Source: Eutreptiella sp. 'Long Island Sound 2002' (taxonomy: Eukaryota > Protista > Euglenida). Taken from it: a stretch of 64,000 nucleotides of DNA. Both the position numbers and the translations under genes were made by a program. The stretch is taken from contig OZ038378.1 of the NCBI GenBank assembly GCA_964036045.1, forward strand, positions 20,088,001 through 20,152,000, given 5' to 3'. The notes below the pieces were generated by a model. It was not told the DNA's origin. It saw only the letters and a list, made by a program, of their open reading frames with translations, and did no database searches. Positions 2,651 to 25,300 of the stretch are shown here, in pieces (the stretch's first letter is position 1; each line of letters begins with the position of its first letter).

Positions 2651-5247
2651 GGGCTGCGCGTTTGGTACGCGCTTCATTGGACACCTGAAGCCTTCTGAGC
2701 CAGACCAACACTGTTGTGCTGGCAGGGGGTCTGCCATGTCAGTTGAATGGGCATGAGGAAGGGTGGGGGGGGGGAGGGTTGATTCACGTACACAGAACAG
2801 TTTTTGCAGAACAAATGTCCAGATGCCCAATCTAGCTACTATACAGGGCTACACAGGGCTGGTAGAATATGGCTGACAGTGATGGGTATCCCAAAAGCAG
2901 CATCCTTGCACTTCCAAGAATGTACAATACATACCTTTTAGGGTACCCCCAGCACACACGGATGGTTGTCCATCAATTGAATTTCTTTGCAGAAGAAATC
3001 CGCCAGTCCTGTCTGTGTCCTGTGGTGCACATTGTAGTCTCTGCTGTCATTTCCCCGGGCCCAAGCGCAGATCTGTCACAGCCCCATCTTAATAGTCTGT
3101 AGTTGATCTTCCCTCGACAGATCTGTGGCAGGTATCATCTCTTTGAGCCCTGTCTGTCGCATGAGGCTTATTCTTCGGCTGCCTGCCTGCTGTGGTGACG
3201 GGTGGGACGTCTTGTGTGTTGCAATTGAGAAAGCTGACGTGGGTGTGCGTTCACCTGCATTGTGCTCTGGAATAGGCTGCTCAACGAAGAAGGGGATGAG
3301 ACCCCAGCCATCCCACACCACCCACCGACATTAGAAAAACCTTTTCCTGGAGGAAAATCCCTGTTACTTGGTATTTGCCAAGCATATTATTCTCAGTGCC
3401 TTCATTTCTCAGACGAGGCTTAAGGGCGGGCACGCCCCACTGTCCGGCATGGGGCGGCTCCTGGGTTAGGGTTGTCCCGGTGGTGTGGCACAGCTTGGGA
3501 TCGGTGCCCCGAAGCCCCTTGCGTCCCACACGGCCCAAACCGACTGAAAATCACCCACATCAAAGACAGGGTTGGGGTCAGTACTTCAATCAGGGTCAGG
3601 ACTATGGTCGGGGCCCGGGTTGGGGTGGTGTGCACAGGGATTCAGGCTTTGACTCGGGTTGGTTCACAGGATGATCAATATTGGAACTGGGGCCGTGGTT
3701 CTAGTTAAGGGCGAAGGTCAGTTATTTTGGGGGTCAGGCGAAAAGTCTGCGCAACAGTAACGGATACACTTGGCATGCAACTGCCTGTACATTACAAGGA
3801 ATGGACAATGAAGACAGCTCAAATGCTGCCTGACTGTGCAGCGTAGGCCAAGAGCCGTCGGGAATTAGTGATATAGCCCTGTCCGTCTGCCAGTTCGCCG
3901 CGGAGCAGAGGGGCATCCAATGGGCATCGGTGAGAGAACCCCTTCCCGGCTCGCCTCCTGACGCCAGTGGCCACACGCCACTGTCTCCGTTGGCCATCCT
4001 GGTCGGCGAAGGACCGACAGCGTGCCTGGCAGCCCAGAGAGCCCCCCAGCGCCCAACCTCCCATGCAGGGAGGGTACGTATCGGCAACAGGTCACAAACA
4101 CGCACGCGCGCGCGCACACACACACACACACACAGAAGCGCCATCACCACCACCACCACCACCACCACCACCTGTGGCTTCTTGTCGGCCACACCTCAAC
4201 ATAAGCAGGCCAGGCCAGAGGTGGTGGAGTGGCGGGACTCATTACTTACATGGGAGGCACAGGGCAGGGGAGCGTGGGAGACACACGCTGCCGTGGGTCG
4301 TCCACCTCGATGGCTCGCATTCGCGGCTAGCGAGGCAGGAGCAGACATCAAAAACTGCCACACACACATCCAACCCCGAAGTTTCGTCGAAGGGATATGC
4401 ACCGTGGCTCGCAAAGCTGCCCATTGGCAACCGGGACCTCAGAGGTCACAGGGAGGGATATTAAACAGGTTGACGTATTCCATTTCGGGGTATCCTTACT
4501 GCACACATGATTGCTCAGCAACCGAGCTGGTAGCACCCGTCGTCGAGGGACGAAGTGCGCGAGCGAGCGACCGATCGAGTGGGGAGTGTGTGCGTGTGCG
4601 TGGTAAGCATGCACACAAGCACCAGCACACATATTTCGCAGGTAAGCGACAGAGAGGCCGCCCCGCTCTCTGGCAAACACGGTGCCAGATGCCCCGCTGA
4701 ACTTTGGCCGGGTATGAGTGCCAAATCTGCTGCAGTCGCCCATCCATCCGATGGGCAGTCCACGATGATTCGCAATCTCCAAAGTCAGACTCAGGGACCC
4801 AATTGTGGAAATGTATCAGCGAGGGTGACGGGGCTGTGGTGGGCTGTGAAGAGCTGATGAGGCTTCATGAGGGCTGTTGAGCGGTGTTGGGGGTTGCGTC
4901 GGATTGTGATGGATTGATCAGGGTCATTGATGGCGATGGAGGGTTGTCAAGGGCTGAGTCGGGCTGTGATGGGCCCGTGAGGACCCACGAAGGGCTGTGT
5001 CGGCCCGAGTAAAGCCCTGAAGGGCGCTGCAACATAACATAGCGCACTTCATCAGTGCCCACAAAAAAATTCGCGGCAGACAGCACAACCTGCGCACTAA
5101 CTGTTGCGGAATGTACGGCGGTGATGCACCACGCCCCTACTGAGACGGTGGGGGGGTTGGGGCATGCCCAGGACCTCAGGGCACATGGGGAAGGAGATCA
5201 CAGGCAGCCTGATGCTGAAAATGTAGGATATCATCCCCGGGGCTGGG

Positions 5248-5421
5248 CTAATTGGGCTGAAGCGCAGGGAAACCTTCCTTGAACTCTGCAATTGCACCGC
5301 GGAGGGTAAAATTGGGGGTCAATGCCTTGTTGGGCAGCTGCAAATTCGTGACGGGGGACGTCGCATGGGTCCCCAACCAACTTTCAATTGCACTCCGCTC
5401 ATAGGAATGCCCATCAGCCGC
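5248..5421 (-). CDS. U-box domain, C-terminal half and last exon ([57 protein letters not shown])
   Basis: Hand translation matches the U-box consensus DGHxYERxAIxxW...SPxT...L.PN..LR..I; acceptor gtttttag| is phase 0, matching the donor at 10361. Not in the ORF track. Confidence 0.88.
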   Translation of the reverse strand, partial: AADGHSYERSAIESWLGTHATSPVTNLQLPNKALTPNFTLRGAIAEFKEGFPALQPN

Positions 5422-6592
5422 CTAAAAACAAAACAACAAAATAACAAAAGGTGCCGTTGGCCACACAAACAGATGGTTGCATGGCATGGGGCATCATCTG
5501 CGTTTACACCTCTGCTGCTGCACGGTTGCCAAAATTGATGTGTTCGTGTTTGTACCGCAAGTAGCTACAGTCTAAATGGCAGAAAGAAAATGGCGGTAGA
5601 AATGCGGGAAGCCCATTCTTGACGATGCCACATACCCCAGCAGAAGCGATCGTGGGTGCTTTTTCGGCTATTGTGGCACATTGTGGAGTAGGCTGCATGC
5701 ATACAAAAGGGGGCGAAGGTCCAGCCGTTTTGGCGCACCCACCGCCCAAACAAATGGCATCACCCATGAAGACTTCACTTGGAACAAAACGACCTCAGCC
5801 CCACCCCAATTCAAAAAGCCCATGGTCAAAGCGGGTCCCACAATTTTTTCTTCTTCTGCACTGTTTGTTTGTTGTTTTTTGGCTGTGTACTTTTCTGCTC
5901 ATCTTTGCCCGGCATCAGGGCTTTTTGGCCTTTTAGTTCTGTTTCTGTGGACGTGTTGATATAGGCTGTGAAAATGCTGCGGCTGCCGCTTCCGTTTGTG
6001 AACTGGGGATTTGGATTGAAAACAGGAGGACTACAGTATTGGTTGTGTTGCCAAGTCCTGCACTATTCGTTTTGGATGAAGTCTGCACTGTTTTGTTTCA
6101 TGTGTTAAAAAACCTGCACTTTTGAAAACCCTGCATTTGACTCAGAGGGGGGTACACCATCGACACACAAGGCACGCGTGTGCCAGCCAGCCCCCCCCCC
6201 CCCCTACGTGCCAGGCGGGCAGCCAAACAGTCAAAACCAAAAAACCTCAAGCTGTGTGAGCGACAATCAAAACGGAAAAGTGGTATTAGATTTTGGCTGC
6301 TGTGATTCCGGGCCTTCGCATGGGGTCAACTTTTGCAGGCGCCAAATCAGAGCTCTAACACTTTGATTTTGATAGTGCCCTGAAGTGCCCACCAGTGTTT
6401 TGGCCACCCCCCCCACACATCACCTATCCACCCCCTCCCCCCTCATGTGCCAGCACAAGTGCCCGCCAAATGTTGGGAAACATCACCCCTCTCATGGCCC
6501 ACCGTGATGTTGTGCCTAACCTGTGCCTGAAAGTACCGCACAACCCCTGCCTTCGTCCAGACCTCCTCCACACACACACACACACACACACA

Positions 6593-6628
<36 letters not shown>

Positions 6629-6656
6629 GGCACGCGCGCGCACACACACACACAAA

Positions 6657-6706
<50 letters not shown>

Positions 6707-9700
6707 GGGAACCGCGAGACAAGAACAAAGCAAGAAAAGCGGTTGAAAGAAAACTCCTCAGGAACAGCAGAGCTGTCCTAGACGTCTTTTGGTCTGTTGG
6801 TAGAGAATGAGCAATTGCAGTTCTGGACAGGGTACCTCACCACTTCCCGCGTTCAGTCCTGCACCGCGCAACAGACCACAAAAACCGCCCTCGGAGGAGC
6901 TAGTGTACCACCGTCGCCTTCGCCTAGATTTATCGTGTGCTGGGTGCCACCACCCAGCCACACACACACAGAGAAACATTCAGGGCAGGGGAGGCAGGAG
7001 GGATGGAGAGACCGGAGCCTGGCCGGGGTTTGGGCAGTGTGGTGCAGCGGCTGTGCAGCCGGCTGCTGCCCTGAAGACCCGAGTTCGAGTCCTCTTCCGC
7101 AGGCAAGCGGGAGAGGACTATGAGGAGGACATGCGCCACCCGGCGGACGGCGGTAGCAGTGACGGGGCGCGCTGCTGCAGGTGTGCCGTGCCTGGTGCCT
7201 CGTTTTTGTGTGTGCCAGGGGGCCAGGGGCTGGGGTAGGGGGCAGGAAAAAGATGGAGGAGACACGCCACCCGACGCACCGGCGGTACCGATGGTGGAGC
7301 GGGATGCTAAAGGGGGCGGTGGCGGGGGCCTCACCGACGGGCCCCTGGACGGACAGACGAACCGGGGTTCGAACCCCCGACCACGATGAGCGCCCGCCAT
7401 GGCGCATACCACTAGACCGTCCATGCCTCTTACCTGTATTGGTGCAAAAATTGTATAGAGGAAATGGTGGGCGGTCACGGGGGTTCGGCCCTACACACTG
7501 CATGTCACCGGGGACGGGGGGATAATGACTGCGGTTGATTCCCGATAGACCTGACGTCCCGGGGCCCAGCAGACAGGGGTGGGGGCGGTGAGGCAATTCA
7601 GGGCCGAGAGTGGTGGGGGCGGCGGGAGAGAGCGAGGGAGGGGTGTTCAGCATCGGGCTCAGGGAACAGTGGCCATTTTACGTAGCAGGGCGATGTCCGT
7701 GCACCAGGTTGGCGTGTACCCCTCTGGCTGAAATTCCCCTGGAATTTCCCTGTCCGTGTATCTGTCGCCTTCCCAGACAGCCCTATTTGCAAGCCAGTGC
7801 ACCAGTTTTGCTGCGGCGGCACCACGAGAGCATGGGAGATCGTGGCCAACGCTGTACGCGGCGCGCATAGTGTTTTCCGACCACCAAGGGGAGGCGGCGT
7901 ACACACGGCGCACTGCTTTGTGCAGCGCCCGCATCACGGTCATTCGCCTGTAGCCTAAAAGCATTGCCAGCTGGGCCCATGCAAGTGCGGACAGAATTTG
8001 GCCAGCCCATGTTTGTTGCCAGGGGAGGGTACCAGTAAGGCTGCTAATGAGTATACAAGGCAAATACTCCCTGGGCGCGCGTGTCGGGCTGATGAGGGGG
8101 GCACCGTACCGGAGTTCCCAGGTGTCTGTGAGTGCAGAAGGATGTGTGATTGCGCAACAGTGGCCCCCTCCCAGTGTCATGTGTACTCCCAGTGCGCGGC
8201 GGCTCTGGCTCAGGCAGTCCCCGCCACATGATGGGGCACCTCCATCCACGCAGTCGCAAAGCACCTCGAGTTTCCAGATGTCCGACAGTAGGTCACAGAC
8301 TTCCTGTACCAGTGTGGTGTGTGTGCCGGGGGGTAAATTGGTCGCCAGAAGCACATTGTCCCTGAATTGCGCCAGGCCGAACCACATTGTGCCCCTGGTC
8401 CAGAAGATGTAGCCGTCCTCGGACAGGCTCATGTTGCCCCAGTCCTTCATCCTTTTACCATTTTTCTTCACCCCCCACAAGGTGTGCAAGTCTGCACTTT
8501 GTGCCGAAAAAGGTCCCCCCATCGGGATGCTGATTTTCCTGCTCCATAGTCGTCCCAAAGCCTGTAGGACGTTGTTGTGTAATAGCTCAAAGTTCAGCAT
8601 TGCCGTCAGATGGCTGTGTGTTAGTACCCAAAATTTTTCACTGGTTGCCCCGCCCGCCCTGTCCAGCTTGGGTGTGTCTCTGTGGATCGACCAATGCAGT
8701 TGCTGTTGCCTCCGGCGCCTTTTCTTGGTCAGCCACTTTGTTGCTTTTCCAAAGGCTCGTGTCACATCCTTCGGGTGTATGTTGTCAAACTGCTTTTTGC
8801 AGTCCACCTCTGTGATTGCGCGTGCCCCTTTTCGTGCAACGAAATGCAGCCAGCCTGACACTGACTGGATGTCGGTGTACTGGAAGTTGTGTGTGATTTC
8901 CGTTTGTAACATGCGGAGCATACAGGTGAAGGTGCGTGCACCCTTTCGTAGTTGGCGCTGCTGGAGGATAGGGGCGGGAAAGGCGGAGATTCCTCTGAAA
9001 ACCCATTTTCCTGTGCGTCGCGACTTTGCCTTTGCCAGGACATAGAGGATGCACAGTTTCCCGTGTTTGTTGCGCTCTAGCTCCATATCTGAGACTGCGT
9101 CCCCAATGGCGCGTGTCCACTGGTCCTGGGTCTAGCCCGTGGCGTGGAACTTTTCATTGATCATAAATTCAGTTACCTTTTCCCAGACCCAGGCAGAGCA
9201 GAAGCCCCACAGTTCCCCCGACCCTTTATCCACAATTCTTGTGTATTGGAAGGATGCAAGGAACTTTGAGAGGCGTCGCAATTGGCGCAGGAGTGTTCCG
9301 GATTCCGGGAACAGTGAGGGGGGTAGCAGGGTGTCCAACGGGGGCACAGGCACATTCAGGTGTGTGCAGAAGGTGGTGATCCCGGAGATCGCCTTCTTAC
9401 GTGCTTTGCTTCCTGGGATGGGAACGGGGTCGTTTGGTCTCAGCCCCCCGTGGCCCCCCACATTCAGGGCAACCGGTATCAGTGCCACATGGCTGTCGAC
9501 GTCAATGACGTCCCCGTATTGCTTCGCCTGACTCGCGAACTCCGCACAGCGGCAGGGGGGCTTTGTCATCATTCTGGACTGTGCCATAGCTTTGGACTGG
9601 AAGACGAATCGTACCGTGTGGGGGTTGGCGCGGACTATACGGACCGTGTGCCGTAGTGCTTGGTGCTCATAAGCTTTCAAGGCGCTGTCGCGTAGAATGT

Positions 9701-10218
9701 TTCGTAGAATGTTTGTGATCACTGTTTTCTGTGTGGCGCTCAGGTTTGGCACAACGACACTCCCGGCAACGTGGAACGGAAGTCCTATTTGTTGTGCGGT
9801 GTCCCGTAGTACTGCTTGCAACGCTTTCACTCTCTGTGCATCCCGCAGGTCACGCGCCTGACGCAGTTCGTGTAGTGTGTGTAACATTTTGCTGTTGATG
9901 TAGGCGCGCTGCTTGTTGGGTGTGTCCGTTTCGCTGATTCCGGGTGGTATATCATTCAAAGCCCACTTGTGCAGGTCCGCCCACCACTGGCGTTCCGCCA
10001 ATCCTGCTTGGAACAGTGTGTCACAATACCGGACTGGGATGGTGATCCAGTTGCTGATGTCGGTGAGGAGCAATTGTGCATGGAAGGAGGCGCTGTCTGT
10101 GCCTGCTCGTGCGTCACAGTAGTGTTTCCGTAACCGTTGGATTGGGGCCTGGGAGGTCTGACCAACGTACACAGCGCCCGTTCTTAAATTTCTTAAACAC
10201 ACACACACACACACGCAC

Positions 10219-10306
<88 letters not shown>

Positions 10307-13300
10307 ATACACACACACTTAGGATGCGCGGGACTTGTGCGATACAGGGCAGGCAAATACCATGACCGGATCCACCATAATGTCTTGCGTGATGGGGCAC
10401 AGAAACGACACAGGGGGCTCTGCCTCGTGGTGCCCGCCGCCTGTGAAATAGAAAGGGGCTGCTGTAGGCGATCGGCATAAGAAGGTGCGTGGATGAGGAG
10501 GAAGAGGAACAGGCACGTGGGCTTTCGAGTGCCCTGACATTGGGCCTCCGGAGTTTGCACCCAGTTGAGAAGACAGGGTGTGGGTGTGTGGGGGGTTCAG
10601 GGGGGGGGGGGCGCTGTTGCCGGTGTGCGCCTTCCAATCTCCTTTAAATTGCGCGGCAGCCCCCAAAATTGACGTCCCAGTGGTGGAGTGGATGTAGGAG
10701 GGCGGGGGGACCACGGCATGAACCCCCACATAAACCCCAACACAGGCCCTGTAAAATGCAATGAGGCAGTGATTAGTCTGAGGTATGTGTCAGGGGAAAA
10801 TGTCTTTCGAAAAGTTTCCCTTGGGCCGCTTGGCGGCCCATTTTACAAGCCATCACTGGTCCTTAGACTGCCCGTTCCTGAGTACTCTTGTGGGATCTTT
10901 GTAATTCGCAACGTGTCACCCCAGCCCTCAAGGGCCCCAGTCCCCCATCCCCACCAAACAGTATACATCAATATCATACCCACCATTCCCGGACACAGAA
11001 ACGGCACCCACCGCCGCTTTCACCACGGGGCGGTGGGCGCTGAGATGGGGGGCGGGGGGGGGGGGGTACATGCAGCCCGTAACACGGACCACAAGCCCGA
11101 CCTGTGGCCTTTGAGTGACTGCAACTCACGCCGTGTTGCGCATTGGGGGTGGCAGGGTCTGATCCCAACGCGGTGCCCTCTGCCGCTGCCCTGGGACGCC
11201 TTTCTGACACCGGAGTAGCGTTCGGCGTACAGCCCTGCAGGGGGCTGTCCGGCCTATCGGGTTGTGGAGGCGCTGACGGACAGCCCCACTCGTGGGGGTG
11301 AGCGGGCTGTGCAACGCAGTGCACGCAATATGCCCTGCCGAAGCGGTTAGCCCTCCCCCTGTGTGACATTCCGTCTGGGTGTTGTTTCTTTACGCGGCCC
11401 TGAACAGTCACCCGTTCTTCCCTTCGCATGTTGCGTCGTGTTGCTTCTTTCTGTCAACCGCTGCGGCCAGTGCTCTTGCTGGTGTCGTTTATGCGTTCGC
11501 AGAGCCCAGTGGTTGGTGTGCTGGGGCTGTGCTGGCTGTGGCATGGCGGGCCGTTTGCGTGTCCGTGGCGCCCAGTAGTTGGCGTTTTTAGGTTGTGCTG
11601 GTTGTCGCCGGGGTCGTTTGACTGTTTTTGCTGTCCACGCGCCTCTGTCCACAGGCCGTCCATAATCTGCCTCACTGTGTTTCCGTGCGTGTGAGGCCCA
11701 GGTGCCCTGTTCCTCCACACGCTGTCCCGACCGTCCACCATTTGTCCCTTTCCCCCCTCACGGCTGGTCTGCCCCTGATGGGCTCCCGCTCCTGTTGCGC
11801 AAACAGCCCATCTGGGCTGCGGGAGACACCCCCCACCTAATGCCAGTTGAGCAGGGGGGCTGGCCGGCCGGGCCATCCCCTTTGTTGTTGCTGCCTCCCA
11901 TGTGCACGCTCTCCCATCCCCTCCATTCTGGTTCCATGTCCTAGTTGCCTCTCCGACCTTGCTGCGCCCCTCCTCCTTGTCAACTGTGCTCGCACTCGTC
12001 CCTCTTGGTGTGGCTCCCGCATCCTGTGTGTCTGTGTTGCTCCTCCCCCTGTTTGTTGGCGCTCCATGGTGCCCCTTTTGCGCACCCACTCCTGTCCCAC
12101 CCGCCTGCCCCCCCCGTATGCGGATTTCACGTCTGCGTATGACGTCGACTGTCCCGCCCACGGTTGGTTGGTCACGGCCCTGCTGCCACCCCCGTGGCGG
12201 GCACCTCCTGGCGCGCGGGGCGCAGCCCCCGCCCTTGTGGAGTTCGTGGGCACCTCGCAGAGGGAGGGGGGGGCTTGTTTGCTGATGGCTCGCTCGGCTC
12301 ACGCCGCATTTGGTGGTTGCTGCTTTGCTTGCACCTCATGGTCCACCAGTGCATTGCTGTGAGTCCTGTTGGGGCTCGTCTCACTGCCGTGTGTGGGGCA
12401 GCCCTGTGCCTAGTTGCTTCGCTGCGTGTGTACCCCCCAATTTGGTGCTCTTGTTTCTTCTGCTGGGGCACTCACCGTTGCTAGTGTGCACTGACGGGGG
12501 GGGGCGGGGCGTGTTGCTCCCTGCCTCCCGTTGTGGCTGTTGGGTGGTCCCACTGCAATTTGGGTGGCACCAGGGGCACCGGGAACTTCTGCACATGTCT
12601 CCAAATCCGCAAAATGATCTGTCACTGGTGTTTGTTGGGGTTGTTTTGTGGTGAATGTGATGCATTGTTGTTCTTATGCATTCTGGGCTGCTGAGGGGCT
12701 CCCTGTTTGAGGACTTCACTCCGGGTTGTTCACGCCTTGGAGCTAGGGACTCGTGTGAGTCCACCCCCTGTTTGGTCGTGGGTAGTGACCACCAACGGTT
12801 TGGACACTGTGTCCCATAATCGTGCCTAAGGCCCCTGCACTATGCCCTAGTGACAGAACTTGGCTACTCATGGGCAGTATATGTTTTAGGTCGCTGCCCA
12901 ATGGTGAACCGCGTAGCCGGTTGCTAACCCCAAGCAGGGGCGACCCCCTTACTTAGGTTTGGGCTACCTCCACTTCCCGGTGTGGTCGGGAAGGTGTTGG
13001 CTCCCGGGAGTGCATGACGGAAGCATCCCTTTTGTGTTGTGTGTGTTTGTGTGGCCTTGGTTGGTTTGTGTGGTGGGTGCGGTGTTGGCGTTGGGGTGTG
13101 GGGTTGTGGGCCCTTGGTGGTGTCCTGCGTGCGTGCCTTGTTCGTTGGCAGCGGTGGTTGTGCATGGGTGGGTTGCCCACATGGTGGGTCTAGCACCCGC
13201 CTTGGGGCGTGCGGTGTTGGGCTAGCATCGGTGTTTGTGGCGCATGTTGTGGCTGTCCGCCGCCGTTGTGCCGTTGCTGCGTTGTGTGCTACATTGTGTT

Positions 13301-22539: not shown

Positions 22540-25300
22540 ACCATTTTTGAGCTGCCGAGGCTATAAGACTGCATAAGCAGGTTGTGCCCCAACCCCCTTG
22601 GGAGCCACCCCCCCCCCACCCCCACCCACCCAAATAAGGTGAAAAACACATAAAGAGGGGCTAAAACATGCTTTACATAGGATATTTGGTCATTGTGGAT
22701 TGTCACAGTGTCAAAATAATCAGTTTCAGAAATTCCATTTTTGAGTTGCCGAGGCTGGAAAACGGCATGAGCAGGTTGTGCCCTAGCCCCCTTGGGAACC
22801 CCCCCCCCCAACATCCAAATAGGGTGCAAAACACATAAAGAGGGGCTAAAACATGCTTTACATAGGATATTTCATCATTGTGAGTGGTCACAATATCAAA
22901 AAAAACTTTTGCAAAATTTTCCATTTTTGACCTGTAGAGGCCAGAAAACTGCTCAAGCAGTTTGTGCACAAACCAAATGCCATTGAACCACCTACAAACA
23001 GCAATTTTGAAGCTTTTGGGGGGCCCATGGCTCGGGCTAGATGGGCCCAGTGGCCACTATGTGGGTTCCCATGGGCACTCAAGTACCCGTATTGTCACCA
23101 AATGATCACCCAAACCCATTCTGGAGGAGAAGAAGGGTTTCCGAAAAAGTCGAAATGTGAAAATTCTATTGCCTTTGGCAAGTCCACCTCGCAGAGAATC
23201 TACCCCAAGCAACACACACCCAAAATAGGGTAAAAACTACATAAATACGGGCTAAAACATGCTTTACATATCTTGGATGGTCATTTGAGGTGATCACAAT
23301 CTCAAAAAAACAAGTTTCGGAAACTTCGATTTTTGAGCTGCCCAGGGTGGAAAAAGTGCATGAGCAAGTTGTGTACCAATCCCATTGGACCCCCCCCCCC
23401 GCACCAAATACCCAAATAGGGTGAAAAACACATAAATACGGCCTAAGGCATGCTTTACGTATCTTGGATGGTCATTTTAGGTGAATAGAAATAAGTTTCG
23501 AAAACTTCAGTTTTCGAGCTGCCCAGAGTGAAAAACTGCATACGCAGGTTGTGTACCATTCTCTTGGGAGCCCCCCCCCCCCCCCCCGCGCCCGATACCC
23601 AAATAAGGTGAAAAACACATAAATACTGCCTAAAAAATGCTTTACATACCTTGGATGGTCATTTTAAGTGATCACGGTATCAAAAAAATAAGTTTCGAAA
23701 ACTTTGATTTTTGAGCTGCACAGGGCGAAAAAAAGACAAAGGAAAAGCAGGTTGTGTACCACTTCATTGCCCACCCCCCCCACAATCCCCAAATAGGGTG
23801 AAAAACACATAAACACTGCCCAAAAAGTGCTTTACATAGCTTGGTCGGTCATTGTGAGTGGTCACAATGTCAAAATAAGTTTCGGAAACTTCGTTTTTTG
23901 AGCTATATAGGGCGAAAAACTGCATGAGCAGGTTGTGTACCACTACATTGGGTCATTCTAGGTGAATAGAAATAAGTTTCGAAAACTTCAGTTTTCGAGC
24001 TGCCCAGAGTGAAAAACTGCATACGCAGGTTGTGTACCATTCTCTTGGGACCCCCCCCCCCCCCGCGCCCGATACCCAAATAAGGTGAAAAACACATAAA
24101 TACTGCCTAAAAAATGCTTTACATACCTTGGATGGTCATTTTAAGTGATCACGGTATCAAAAAAATAAGTTTCGAAAACTTTGATTTTTGAGCTGCACAG
24201 GGCGAAAAACAGGCAAAGGAAAAGCAGGTTGTGTACCACTTCATTGCCCCCCCCCCCCCCCCCCCCACAATCCCCAAATAGGGTGAAAAACACATAAACA
24301 CTGCCCAAAAAGTGCTTTACATAGCTTGGTCGGTCATTGTGAGTGGTCACAATGTCAAAATAAGTTTCGGAAACTTCGTTTTTTGAGCTATATAGGGCGA
24401 AAAACTGCATGAGCAGGTTGTGTACCACTCCATTGGGTCATTTTAGGTGAATAGAAATAAGTTTCGAAAACTTCAGTTTTCGAGCTGCCCAGAGTGAAAA
24501 ATTGCATACGCAGGTTGTGTACCATTCTCTTGGGAGCCCCCCCCCCCCCCCGCGCCCGATACCCAAATAAGGTGAAAAACACATAAATACTGCCTAAAAA
24601 ATGCTTTACATACCTTGGATGGTCATTTTAAGTGATCACGGTATCAAAAAAATAAGTTTCGAAAACTTTGATTTTTGAGCTGCACAGGGCGAAAAACAGG
24701 CAAAGGAAAAGCAGGTTGTGTACCACTTCATTGCCCCCCCGTATGGTGACGTGTGAGCTGTCACGTGTGTGTTGGTTGAGACGAAATCAGCACAACAGGC
24801 AGCACATGCAGATCACAAGAAGGAGAGGAAAAGCTTGTCAAGAGCCGAGACGGCCCTAGGCGCCTTTCGCAAAAAGTCGAAAAAAAAATAGACACTCAGA
24901 AAGCCCCCCCCCCCCCCCACAATCCCCAAATAGGGTGAAAAACACATAAACACTGCCCAAAAAGTGCTTTACATAGCTTGGTCGGTCATTGTGAGTGGTC
25001 ACAATGTCAAAATAAGTTTCGGAAACTTCGTTTTTTGAGCTATATAGGGCGAAAAACTGCATGAGCAGGTTGTGTACCACTCCATTGGGTGACCCCCCCC
25101 CCCCCTTCCCGGCGCACCCAATACCCAAATAAGGTGAAAAACACCGAAATACTGCCTAAAACATGCTTTACCTACCTTGGAGGGTCATTTTAGGTGATCA
25201 CAATATCAAAAAAAAAATAAGTTTCAGAATCTTCGATCTTTGAGCTACCCAAGATCAAAAACTGCAAAGTCATTTCGCGTCTTTGGCACGGGTTTTGACC
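22540..25300. repeat. Tandem ~190-bp subunits (core CCCAAATAGGGTGAAAAACACATAAA...CATGCTTTACATA) with a ~480-bp higher-order repeat in three copies starting near 23470, 23951 and 24437
   Basis: About 11 recurrences of the core; GGTCATT(T/C)TAGGTGAATAGAAATAAG recurs at ~481 and ~486 bp spacing. Confidence 0.9.
24741..24903 (-). mobile_element. 163-bp retroposed insert starting with a euglenid spliced leader (CTTTCTGAGTGTCTATTTTTTTTTCG, 24903-24878)
   Basis: Matches the Euglena SL ACTTTCTGAGTGTCTATTTTTTTTCG apart from the missing first A and one extra T. It is not followed by GT, so it is not an SL RNA gene. It sits in a poly-C run that is empty in the two sister repeat copies. Confidence 0.85.

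Follow-up and report, generated by a model that had tools for sequence, protein, structure and literature searches.

A spliced-leader-headed insert in a Eutreptiella C-run as a probable by-product of a Chlamys-type Penelope-like element

The window analysed here, a stretch of 64,000 nucleotides from the euglenid Eutreptiella sp. 'Long Island Sound 2002' (contig OZ038378.1, positions 20,088,001 to 20,152,000), carries at 24741-24903 on the minus strand a clean 163-bp insert made up of a 26-nt spliced leader (SL) and a 137-nt body. We found that the body matches the 3' tail of a Penelope-like element (PLE), and the insert very probably derives from an RNA, written back into DNA, in which the SL was followed by the final 137 nt of this element; as such it would be a by-product mobilized in trans by a PLE of the Chlamys type. 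It is not a new kind of mobile RNA. A sequence-only reading of the window had described an SL-headed insert on the minus strand with a 137-nt body, no poly(A) and a GTGAC/GTCAC hairpin, and our analysis confirmed these coordinates. The insert and its site comprise the following features.

24741..24903, minus strand: the complete retro-insert, consisting of the SL and a PLE 3' tail, missing from two sister repeat copies
24878..24903, minus strand: the SL part, an SL exon lacking its first A and having T9 for T8, which stops exactly at the exon 3' end (..CG)
24741..24877, minus strand: the 137-nt body, which corresponds to the 3'-terminal 137 nt of the element (its positions 5076-5212)
24734..24740, minus strand: a G7 run (C7 on the plus strand) adjoining the 3' end of the tail, which forms the downstream part of the target run that the insert splits
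24904..24918, minus strand: a G15 run (C15 on the plus strand) adjoining the 5' end of the SL, which forms the upstream part of that target run
24247..24266, plus strand: an empty sister site with an unbroken C20 in repeat copy 2, from the alignment of the repeat copies
23770..23781, plus strand: an empty sister site, C3AC8, in repeat copy 1, from the same alignment
23470..25085 (end approximate), plus strand: the host repeat of the insert, a ~485-bp higher-order repeat of ~190-bp units with a C-run in each

The insert sits in the third copy of the higher-order repeat, for which Tandem Repeats Finder (TRF) gave a period of 485 bp and 97% identity over 23470-24740. Once the 163 bp were removed, this third copy showed no mismatch with copy 2 over ~300 bp, and the length of the C-run alone differed. 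Thus the insertion is clean and recent. The filled site has a total of 22 C (C7 plus C15) compared with 20 in the empty site (C20), and comparison of the two revealed no target-site duplication or deletion beyond these two homopolymer bases. The proposals that the insert splits a C-run left unbroken in repeat copies 1 and 2 (C3AC8 and C20 respectively), and that it arrived recently, were both borne out. A 21-mer of the SL was present a single time in the window and absent from all 100 shuffles. Genome-wide, the 26-nt SL followed by GT was found 1219 times, in agreement with the earlier statement that SL RNA genes carry GT after the leader, and the leader portion of the insert stops precisely at this donor. 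The outrons and SL RNAs of Euglena use GT/AG splice sites (PMC10679874).

To identify the body, the genome (2.28 Gb) was searched with the insert, which gave 1484 first-look candidates and 41 scored matches. Most of the 41 covered query positions 26-163 alone, that is the body, at 99-100% identity, and among the fetched loci the body of the window copy was 100% identical to 27 parent tails. In these parents a pyrimidine-rich stretch ending in CTCACAG lies immediately upstream, so that the body begins at the base after the AG of a splice acceptor. At the other end, the body finished in all copies with ..CCATAC, beyond which lay 4-14 G and, after these, unrelated flank. Because CTCACAG precedes the body, ..CCATAC and a G-run end it and the flanks are unrelated thereafter, the body is, as judged from alignment, the 3' terminus of a repeated element, lying downstream of a splice acceptor in the 3' untranslated region (3'UTR) of that element. 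The acceptor CTCACAG|AC is located 95 nt past the stop codon of the second ORF (open reading frame; ORF2) and 137 nt short of the element 3' end, and was kept in diverged subfamilies (L073 and L075). The SL|body junction of the insert thus falls exactly at the SL donor on one side and directly after the CAG of the parents on the other, as in a retrocopy of a trans-spliced RNA; the insert had been suggested to be such a copy, and the exact donor/acceptor junction agrees with this. A different origin, in which the body would be the 5'UTR of an ordinary host gene and the insert an incomplete retrocopy of its mRNA, made by any reverse transcriptase (RT), might seem attractive in a genome where other SL-headed sequences are abundant (1569 matches for SL followed by a non-G base). 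However, the body is the terminal 137 nt of a retroelement and ends at the element 3' terminus with a G-run, and no other source appeared among the 41 matches scored. We consider a host-mRNA retrocopy extremely improbable, and the idea of a captured host template, or of the 5'UTR of an ordinary gene, was dropped.

Patterns were then counted over the whole genome, each with the same pattern read backwards as a control, which gave 0 matches wherever listed, including for the SL|tail junction. We detected 57 SL|tail junctions (last 8 nt of the SL plus first 17 nt of the tail, with at most one mismatch). Tail starts in any upstream context numbered 388, with 276 after YAG and ~53 after the SL; tail ends numbered 463, and GGGG came next in 387 of these (84%). 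All 30 of the SL-junction loci that were fetched aligned to the element in the tail only, at 82-100% identity to the young element, and the whole tail was spanned in 26 of the 30. At least four G abutted the SL in 23 of 31 SL-headed copies and at least four G followed the tail in 24 of 31, the G strand always being the sense strand of the element. The 5' end of the SL was trimmed by 0-6 nt in most SL-headed copies, to an extent that differed between close relatives. The many dispersed copies of SL plus body in G/C runs that a genome search had been expected to reveal were therefore present (57 junctions compared with 0 for the reversed control).

These counts bear on two further explanations. 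In the first, an assembly chimera or cDNA contamination, a cDNA fragment would have been joined into a homopolymer run at assembly, where such runs are error-prone. The same order of G-run, trimmed SL, tail and G-run nevertheless recurs at dozens of loci with differing flanks, is also seen in diverged and partly mutated copies, and shows a target preference equal to that of the acceptor-bearing copies, which makes an artefact very unlikely. The second, recombination or gene conversion at the DNA level with an SL RNA gene and an element tail as partners, could draw on the high copy number of both (1219 SL genes and 463 tail ends), but the junction coincides exactly with the SL donor on one side and the element AG acceptor on the other, it is found at 57 loci among which the trimming of the SL 5' end varies, and it is accompanied by neither the intron nor the flank of an SL gene. 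We give such an exchange almost no credence.

A more serious question is whether the SL-headed copies are a lineage of their own or are made anew from acceptor-bearing parents. Copies of both kinds were counted for two variants and one subfamily of the tail.

T variant: 12 SL-headed copies, 80 acceptor-bearing copies
C variant: ~40 SL-headed copies, 196 acceptor-bearing copies
GGGTCG subfamily: 15 SL-headed copies, 46 acceptor-bearing copies

Every variant or subfamily checked thus held both SL-headed copies and acceptor-bearing parents with the same diagnostic bases, the parents being the more numerous in each. The SL-headed copies lack the AG acceptor; they therefore cannot be re-spliced at that site, and the leader is not renewable there. 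They also encode nothing, and therefore must be copied in trans. A self-propagating SL-SINE (SINE, short interspersed element), in which copies of SL plus tail form a non-autonomous lineage that is re-transcribed and re-copied and whose 5' boundary is the flanking G-run, would account for the 57 dispersed copies in G-runs and for the existence of groups of closely similar SL-headed copies; in principle, a copy inside a read-through transcript could be re-copied with its 5' join at the upstream G-run. We think this unlikely, as the lost acceptor means that a leader is not regained at that site, each of the three groups has more parents carrying the same diagnostic bases, the window copy is identical to the 27 parent tails, and the trimming of the SL varies among close relatives although a trimmed leader cannot regrow. 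Nor did we find the hallmarks of a SINE, namely a promoter of its own or a head derived from a small RNA, and spread as a lineage. The SL forms the head of these copies, and Rfam found no part resembling tRNA, 5S or 7SL RNA. Because SL forms sit beside parents in each variant and SL trimming differs among relatives, the SL-headed copies appear to have arisen repeatedly and independently. They are best read as repeatedly regenerated, dead-on-arrival products, to which re-copying of existing SL-headed copies may have made a minor contribution. The short SL-capped mobile RNA family that had been put forward for this insert thus gives way to an element's own 3' tail past an AG acceptor, with acceptor-bearing parents in each subfamily.

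The parent element was characterized from a full copy (L061, reverse strand, 4333-9544) of 5212 bp with two ORFs. ORF1 encodes 424 amino acids (aa) with CCHC knuckles, and ORF2 encodes 987 aa counted from a conserved Met, with a GIY-YIG domain at aa 126-208, then a CHC motif (PxCxC in the alignment consensus) and a C-terminal RT. This is the permuted order of N-terminal endonuclease, CxC linker and C-terminal RT that marks the Chlamys/Naiad clade. Pfam gave a weak N-terminal GIY-YIG match in the L061 ORF2 (PF01541, E 0.003) and matched GIY-YIG in 7 of 150 relatives (best E 1.9e-5); Pfam RVT_1 did not detect the ORF2 RT, and a profile search against PDB sequences returned no match. A word-based homologue search with ORF2 found four unnamed proteins (source ENA) that were 43-98% identical, and a full hidden Markov model (HMM) search gave 1307 unnamed matches, mostly fragments among the 150 listed, which served solely as alignment depth for AlphaFold. 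The AlphaFold (AF2) model of ORF2 had a predicted local distance difference test score (pLDDT) of 86.8. When this model was compared with the PDB using Foldseek, the top 18 matches were all telomerase RTs (TERT; E 5.6e-10 to 1e-5), and the group II intron, LINE-1 and R2 RTs ranked below them. The N-terminal domain, modelled separately (pLDDT 82.4), matched best the GIY-YIG catalytic domain of I-TevI, with a template-modelling (TM) score of 0.77-0.80 depending on the target and a root-mean-square deviation of 2.3-2.4 Å, followed by the GIY-YIG domains of UvrC and Slx1. The predicted structures thus point to an RT of the telomerase-related type and to a GIY-YIG endonuclease in ORF2, both as in PLEs.

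The ends of the element are also those of a PLE. Upstream of all 13 of 13 full-length 5' ends lay a tail copy truncated at its 5' end and then exactly GGGG, the arrangement of a pseudo-long terminal repeat (pseudo-LTR). This upstream partial tail copy was ~285 nt in most full-length elements and ~70 nt in L072, and most such copies start within the element at a G-rich tract, which abuts a flank that is also G-rich. The insertion bias towards microsatellite or homopolymer runs known from the Chlamys type was apparent here as G-runs at the tail ends and at the 5' joins and as the C20 empty site. Hammerhead-bearing pseudo-LTRs were not found, as Rfam detected no hammerhead in the insert (E<=10) or in the whole element (E<=1). 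On the basis of the GIY-YIG domain, CxC linker, telomerase-like RT, pseudo-LTRs and G-run insertion, we assign the parent by architecture, predicted structure and target to the Chlamys-type PLEs of the N-terminal-endonuclease Chlamys/Naiad clade. A non-L1 RT such as that of a PLE had already been suggested as one possibility, and a PLE-type RT is the likely agent.

Several observations weigh against our interpretation. The Pfam score of the GIY-YIG domain in the L061 copy is 18 bits, under the curated cut-off of 22.6, and motif C of the RT reads FRDN rather than the usual ..DD. Some of the copies are duplicates rather than independent insertions, since L037 and L038 share flanks and L039 and L042 are similar. 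The junction loci that were inspected are 30 of the 57, with pattern counts covering the whole genome, and the fetched acceptor-bearing parents belong almost all to the youngest subfamily. We infer trans-splicing at the acceptor from DNA junctions, and the assembly at the insert locus is taken as given. Finally, none of the 13 full-length copies was SL-headed (0/13), and no full-length 5' end lay near an SL junction.

To judge from the DNA junctions, the RNA that was copied had the SL at the acceptor, retained the 3' end of the element, and was inserted within a single G/C run. We propose the following order of events. An element copy would be transcribed, and the host spliceosome would join the 26-nt SL to the acceptor in its 3'UTR, yielding a short RNA of SL, 137-nt tail and a few G, in which the coding sequence is gone and the 3' end for the RT is kept. 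Protein from another copy may then act in trans, its GIY-YIG nuclease nicking the C-strand of a G/C homopolymer run; the 3' end of the C-run could pair with the terminal G of the RNA and prime reverse transcription, which would reach the capped 5' end of the SL or stop a few bases short of it. Finally, the cDNA end would be attached to the remaining half of that run. G residues were always present at the position of the RNA 3' end, and exactly four of them at pseudo-LTR junctions. Joins to G-runs were also observed at 5'-truncated and pseudo-LTR ends, and the G-run join is therefore a property of the element and not of the cap.

Why the acceptor is kept may be explained by its position in both copies of the tail. 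Tentatively, and with less confidence than we place in the origin of the insert, we suggest that the tail acceptor could be a maintained device: the upstream pseudo-LTR copy would give the full-length mRNA its SL cap, and the downstream copy would shed SL-plus-tail RNAs. The capped mRNA would then read SL, 137-nt tail, GGGG, ORF1/ORF2, in a PLE that is otherwise poor in promoter and cap. On this reading, both joins would be made within a single G/C run, and the ~57 SL-headed copies would amount to a natural deletion experiment, showing that the 137-nt tail with a few G is all that a PLE needs in cis to carry out target-primed reverse transcription in trans. Since no SL-headed full-length copy was among the 13, this capping role is put forward as a possibility.

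Alignment of 27 distinct tails showed that the first ~50 and the last ~30 nt were strongly conserved. Two hairpins are located in the window copy.

24842..24856, minus strand: hairpin GGGCCG / CGGCUC, whose pairing persists across subfamilies despite G-U/G-C changes and loops of differing length (RNAalifold, 27 tails)
24746..24764, minus strand: 3'-proximal GTGAC...GTCAC hairpin, highly conserved in sequence, with clear covariation not seen in the 27 tails

Supporting changes were found in the GGGCCG/CGGCUC hairpin only, and the long-range pairs of the RNAalifold consensus were distrusted. A hammerhead ribozyme was also considered for the tail, in which GAAA and CUGAUUU/CUGACGU can be recognized by eye; the canonical CUGANGA core is missing, and the candidate was rejected on this and on the negative Rfam result.

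The surroundings of the insert and of its parent gave some additional observations. The ~190-bp C-run repeat family (window 22541-25250; flanks of L018, L024, L026 and L044) has taken several independent element copies, including full tails and one SL-headed copy, and its C-runs seem to be targeted repeatedly. The locus L046 (G000:C4:11649311-11652335) has two SL|tail junctions within 3 kb with an identical upstream flank, a local duplication in which one copy is interrupted after ~100 nt. In the alignment of ORF2 relatives (L061:689-3652:-, alignment A1), FRDN was invariant at just 42-50% identity, despite the many near-identical young copies in the family. A 629-aa ORF with a clear Pfam RVT_1 match (E 4.7e-13) at L061:8090-9979:- belongs to a different retroelement just upstream of the PLE pseudo-LTR. 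The window itself contains, at 7659-10637 on the minus strand, a diverged relative of the parent that is split into at least two ORFs and has a weak GIY-YIG match (E 0.0016). The nearby PLE had been named as a possible provider of the RT; it is not the source of the insert, being a relative with 31-40% aa identity to the parent (tblastx).

The SL also heads sequences other than this tail. The SL (T8) followed by a non-G base occurs 1569 times genome-wide and many of the following sequences recur; in one such family, three fetched copies (L076-L078) start with the complete 26-nt SL and lie in unrelated flanks without G-runs. SL-headed retroelement copies are therefore general in this genome. 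The earlier suggestion was that loss of the first SL nucleotides may come from RT stalling at the modified cap; in SL-headed LINE-like families (LINE, long interspersed element), the leader was complete in 6 of 8 fetched copies and no G-run was present. Two related SL-headed elements were found inside long (TA)n microsatellites at L079 and L081 (G000:C1:36349700-36351700 and C1:43590300-43592300), and the target preference of this family differs from that of the G-run element. At C1:141688635, C1:1042733, C1:72395306, L058 and L043, an SL was followed directly by a second partial or whole SL. Such doubled leaders have the appearance of SL relics, compatible with trans-splicing followed by reverse transcription in more than one cycle.

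Retrotransposition of PLEs has no in vitro system (PMC8557442), and the present copies bear on what their RT recognizes and on the origin of the microsatellite target bias. They suggest that the last 137 nt and a short G-run suffice for mobilization in trans, and the empty sister sites indicate that, where a homopolymer run is the target, no more than 2 nt are duplicated or deleted on integration. Host trans-splicing, which acts on >70% of mRNAs in Euglena (PMC10679874), also seems to act on retroelement RNA at a conserved site, raising the idea of cap acquisition.

In the eel pair UnaL2/UnaSINE1, a short non-coding RNA is copied in trans through a 3' tail recognized by the partner RT, and SINEs of this type have their own RNA polymerase III promoter and propagate as a lineage. 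For the copies of SL plus tail, in contrast, there is no evidence of a promoter, and each seems to be made anew from a parent. Retrozymes, non-autonomous partners of PLEs, resemble them in being short, non-coding and dependent on PLE machinery (bioRxiv 10.64898/2026.07.22.740005); retrozymes, however, bear hammerhead ribozymes, and a circular RNA route is proposed for them, whereas the SL-plus-tail copies are linear and SL-headed, with no Rfam hammerhead. In the SpIREs of human LINE-1 (PMC5860796), splice sites in retrotransposon RNA likewise give shortened copies that are still retrotransposed and dead on arrival. SpIREs lose internal sequence by cis-splicing, whereas trans-splicing appears to have replaced everything upstream of the last 137 nt in the insert. 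In dinoflagellate SL-relic retrogenes (PMC5585692 and PMC6050394), as in the insert, a genomic SL marks a reverse-transcribed trans-spliced RNA; those copies are host genes turned retrogenes, whereas the insert is a non-coding retroelement fragment shortened by trans-splicing, in a euglenid.

The closest known relatives of the parent are the Chlamys/Naiad PLEs (Craig et al. 2021, PMC8557442), with which it shares the GIY-YIG-CxC-RT order, pseudo-LTRs, the lack of a canonical hammerhead and insertion into homopolymers or microsatellites. In Chlamys PLEs (C)n is reported to be a common target, and most Chlamys elements are without a canonical hammerhead (PMC8557442). The parent differs in its euglenid host, its separate CCHC ORF1 and its FRDN motif C, and in the conserved trans-splice acceptor in its tail together with the SL-headed tail copies. 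PMC8557442 does not mention trans-splicing; our literature search revealed no paper in which PLEs are connected with Euglena or with trans-splicing, and the Euglena genome papers examined mention neither connection. SL-tagged DNA copies have been published for dinoflagellate genes, and we found none for euglenids or PLEs. To these known systems the present locus adds empty sister sites, subfamily counts, a link between pseudo-LTR and acceptor, and support from predicted structures for both enzyme domains of the parent.

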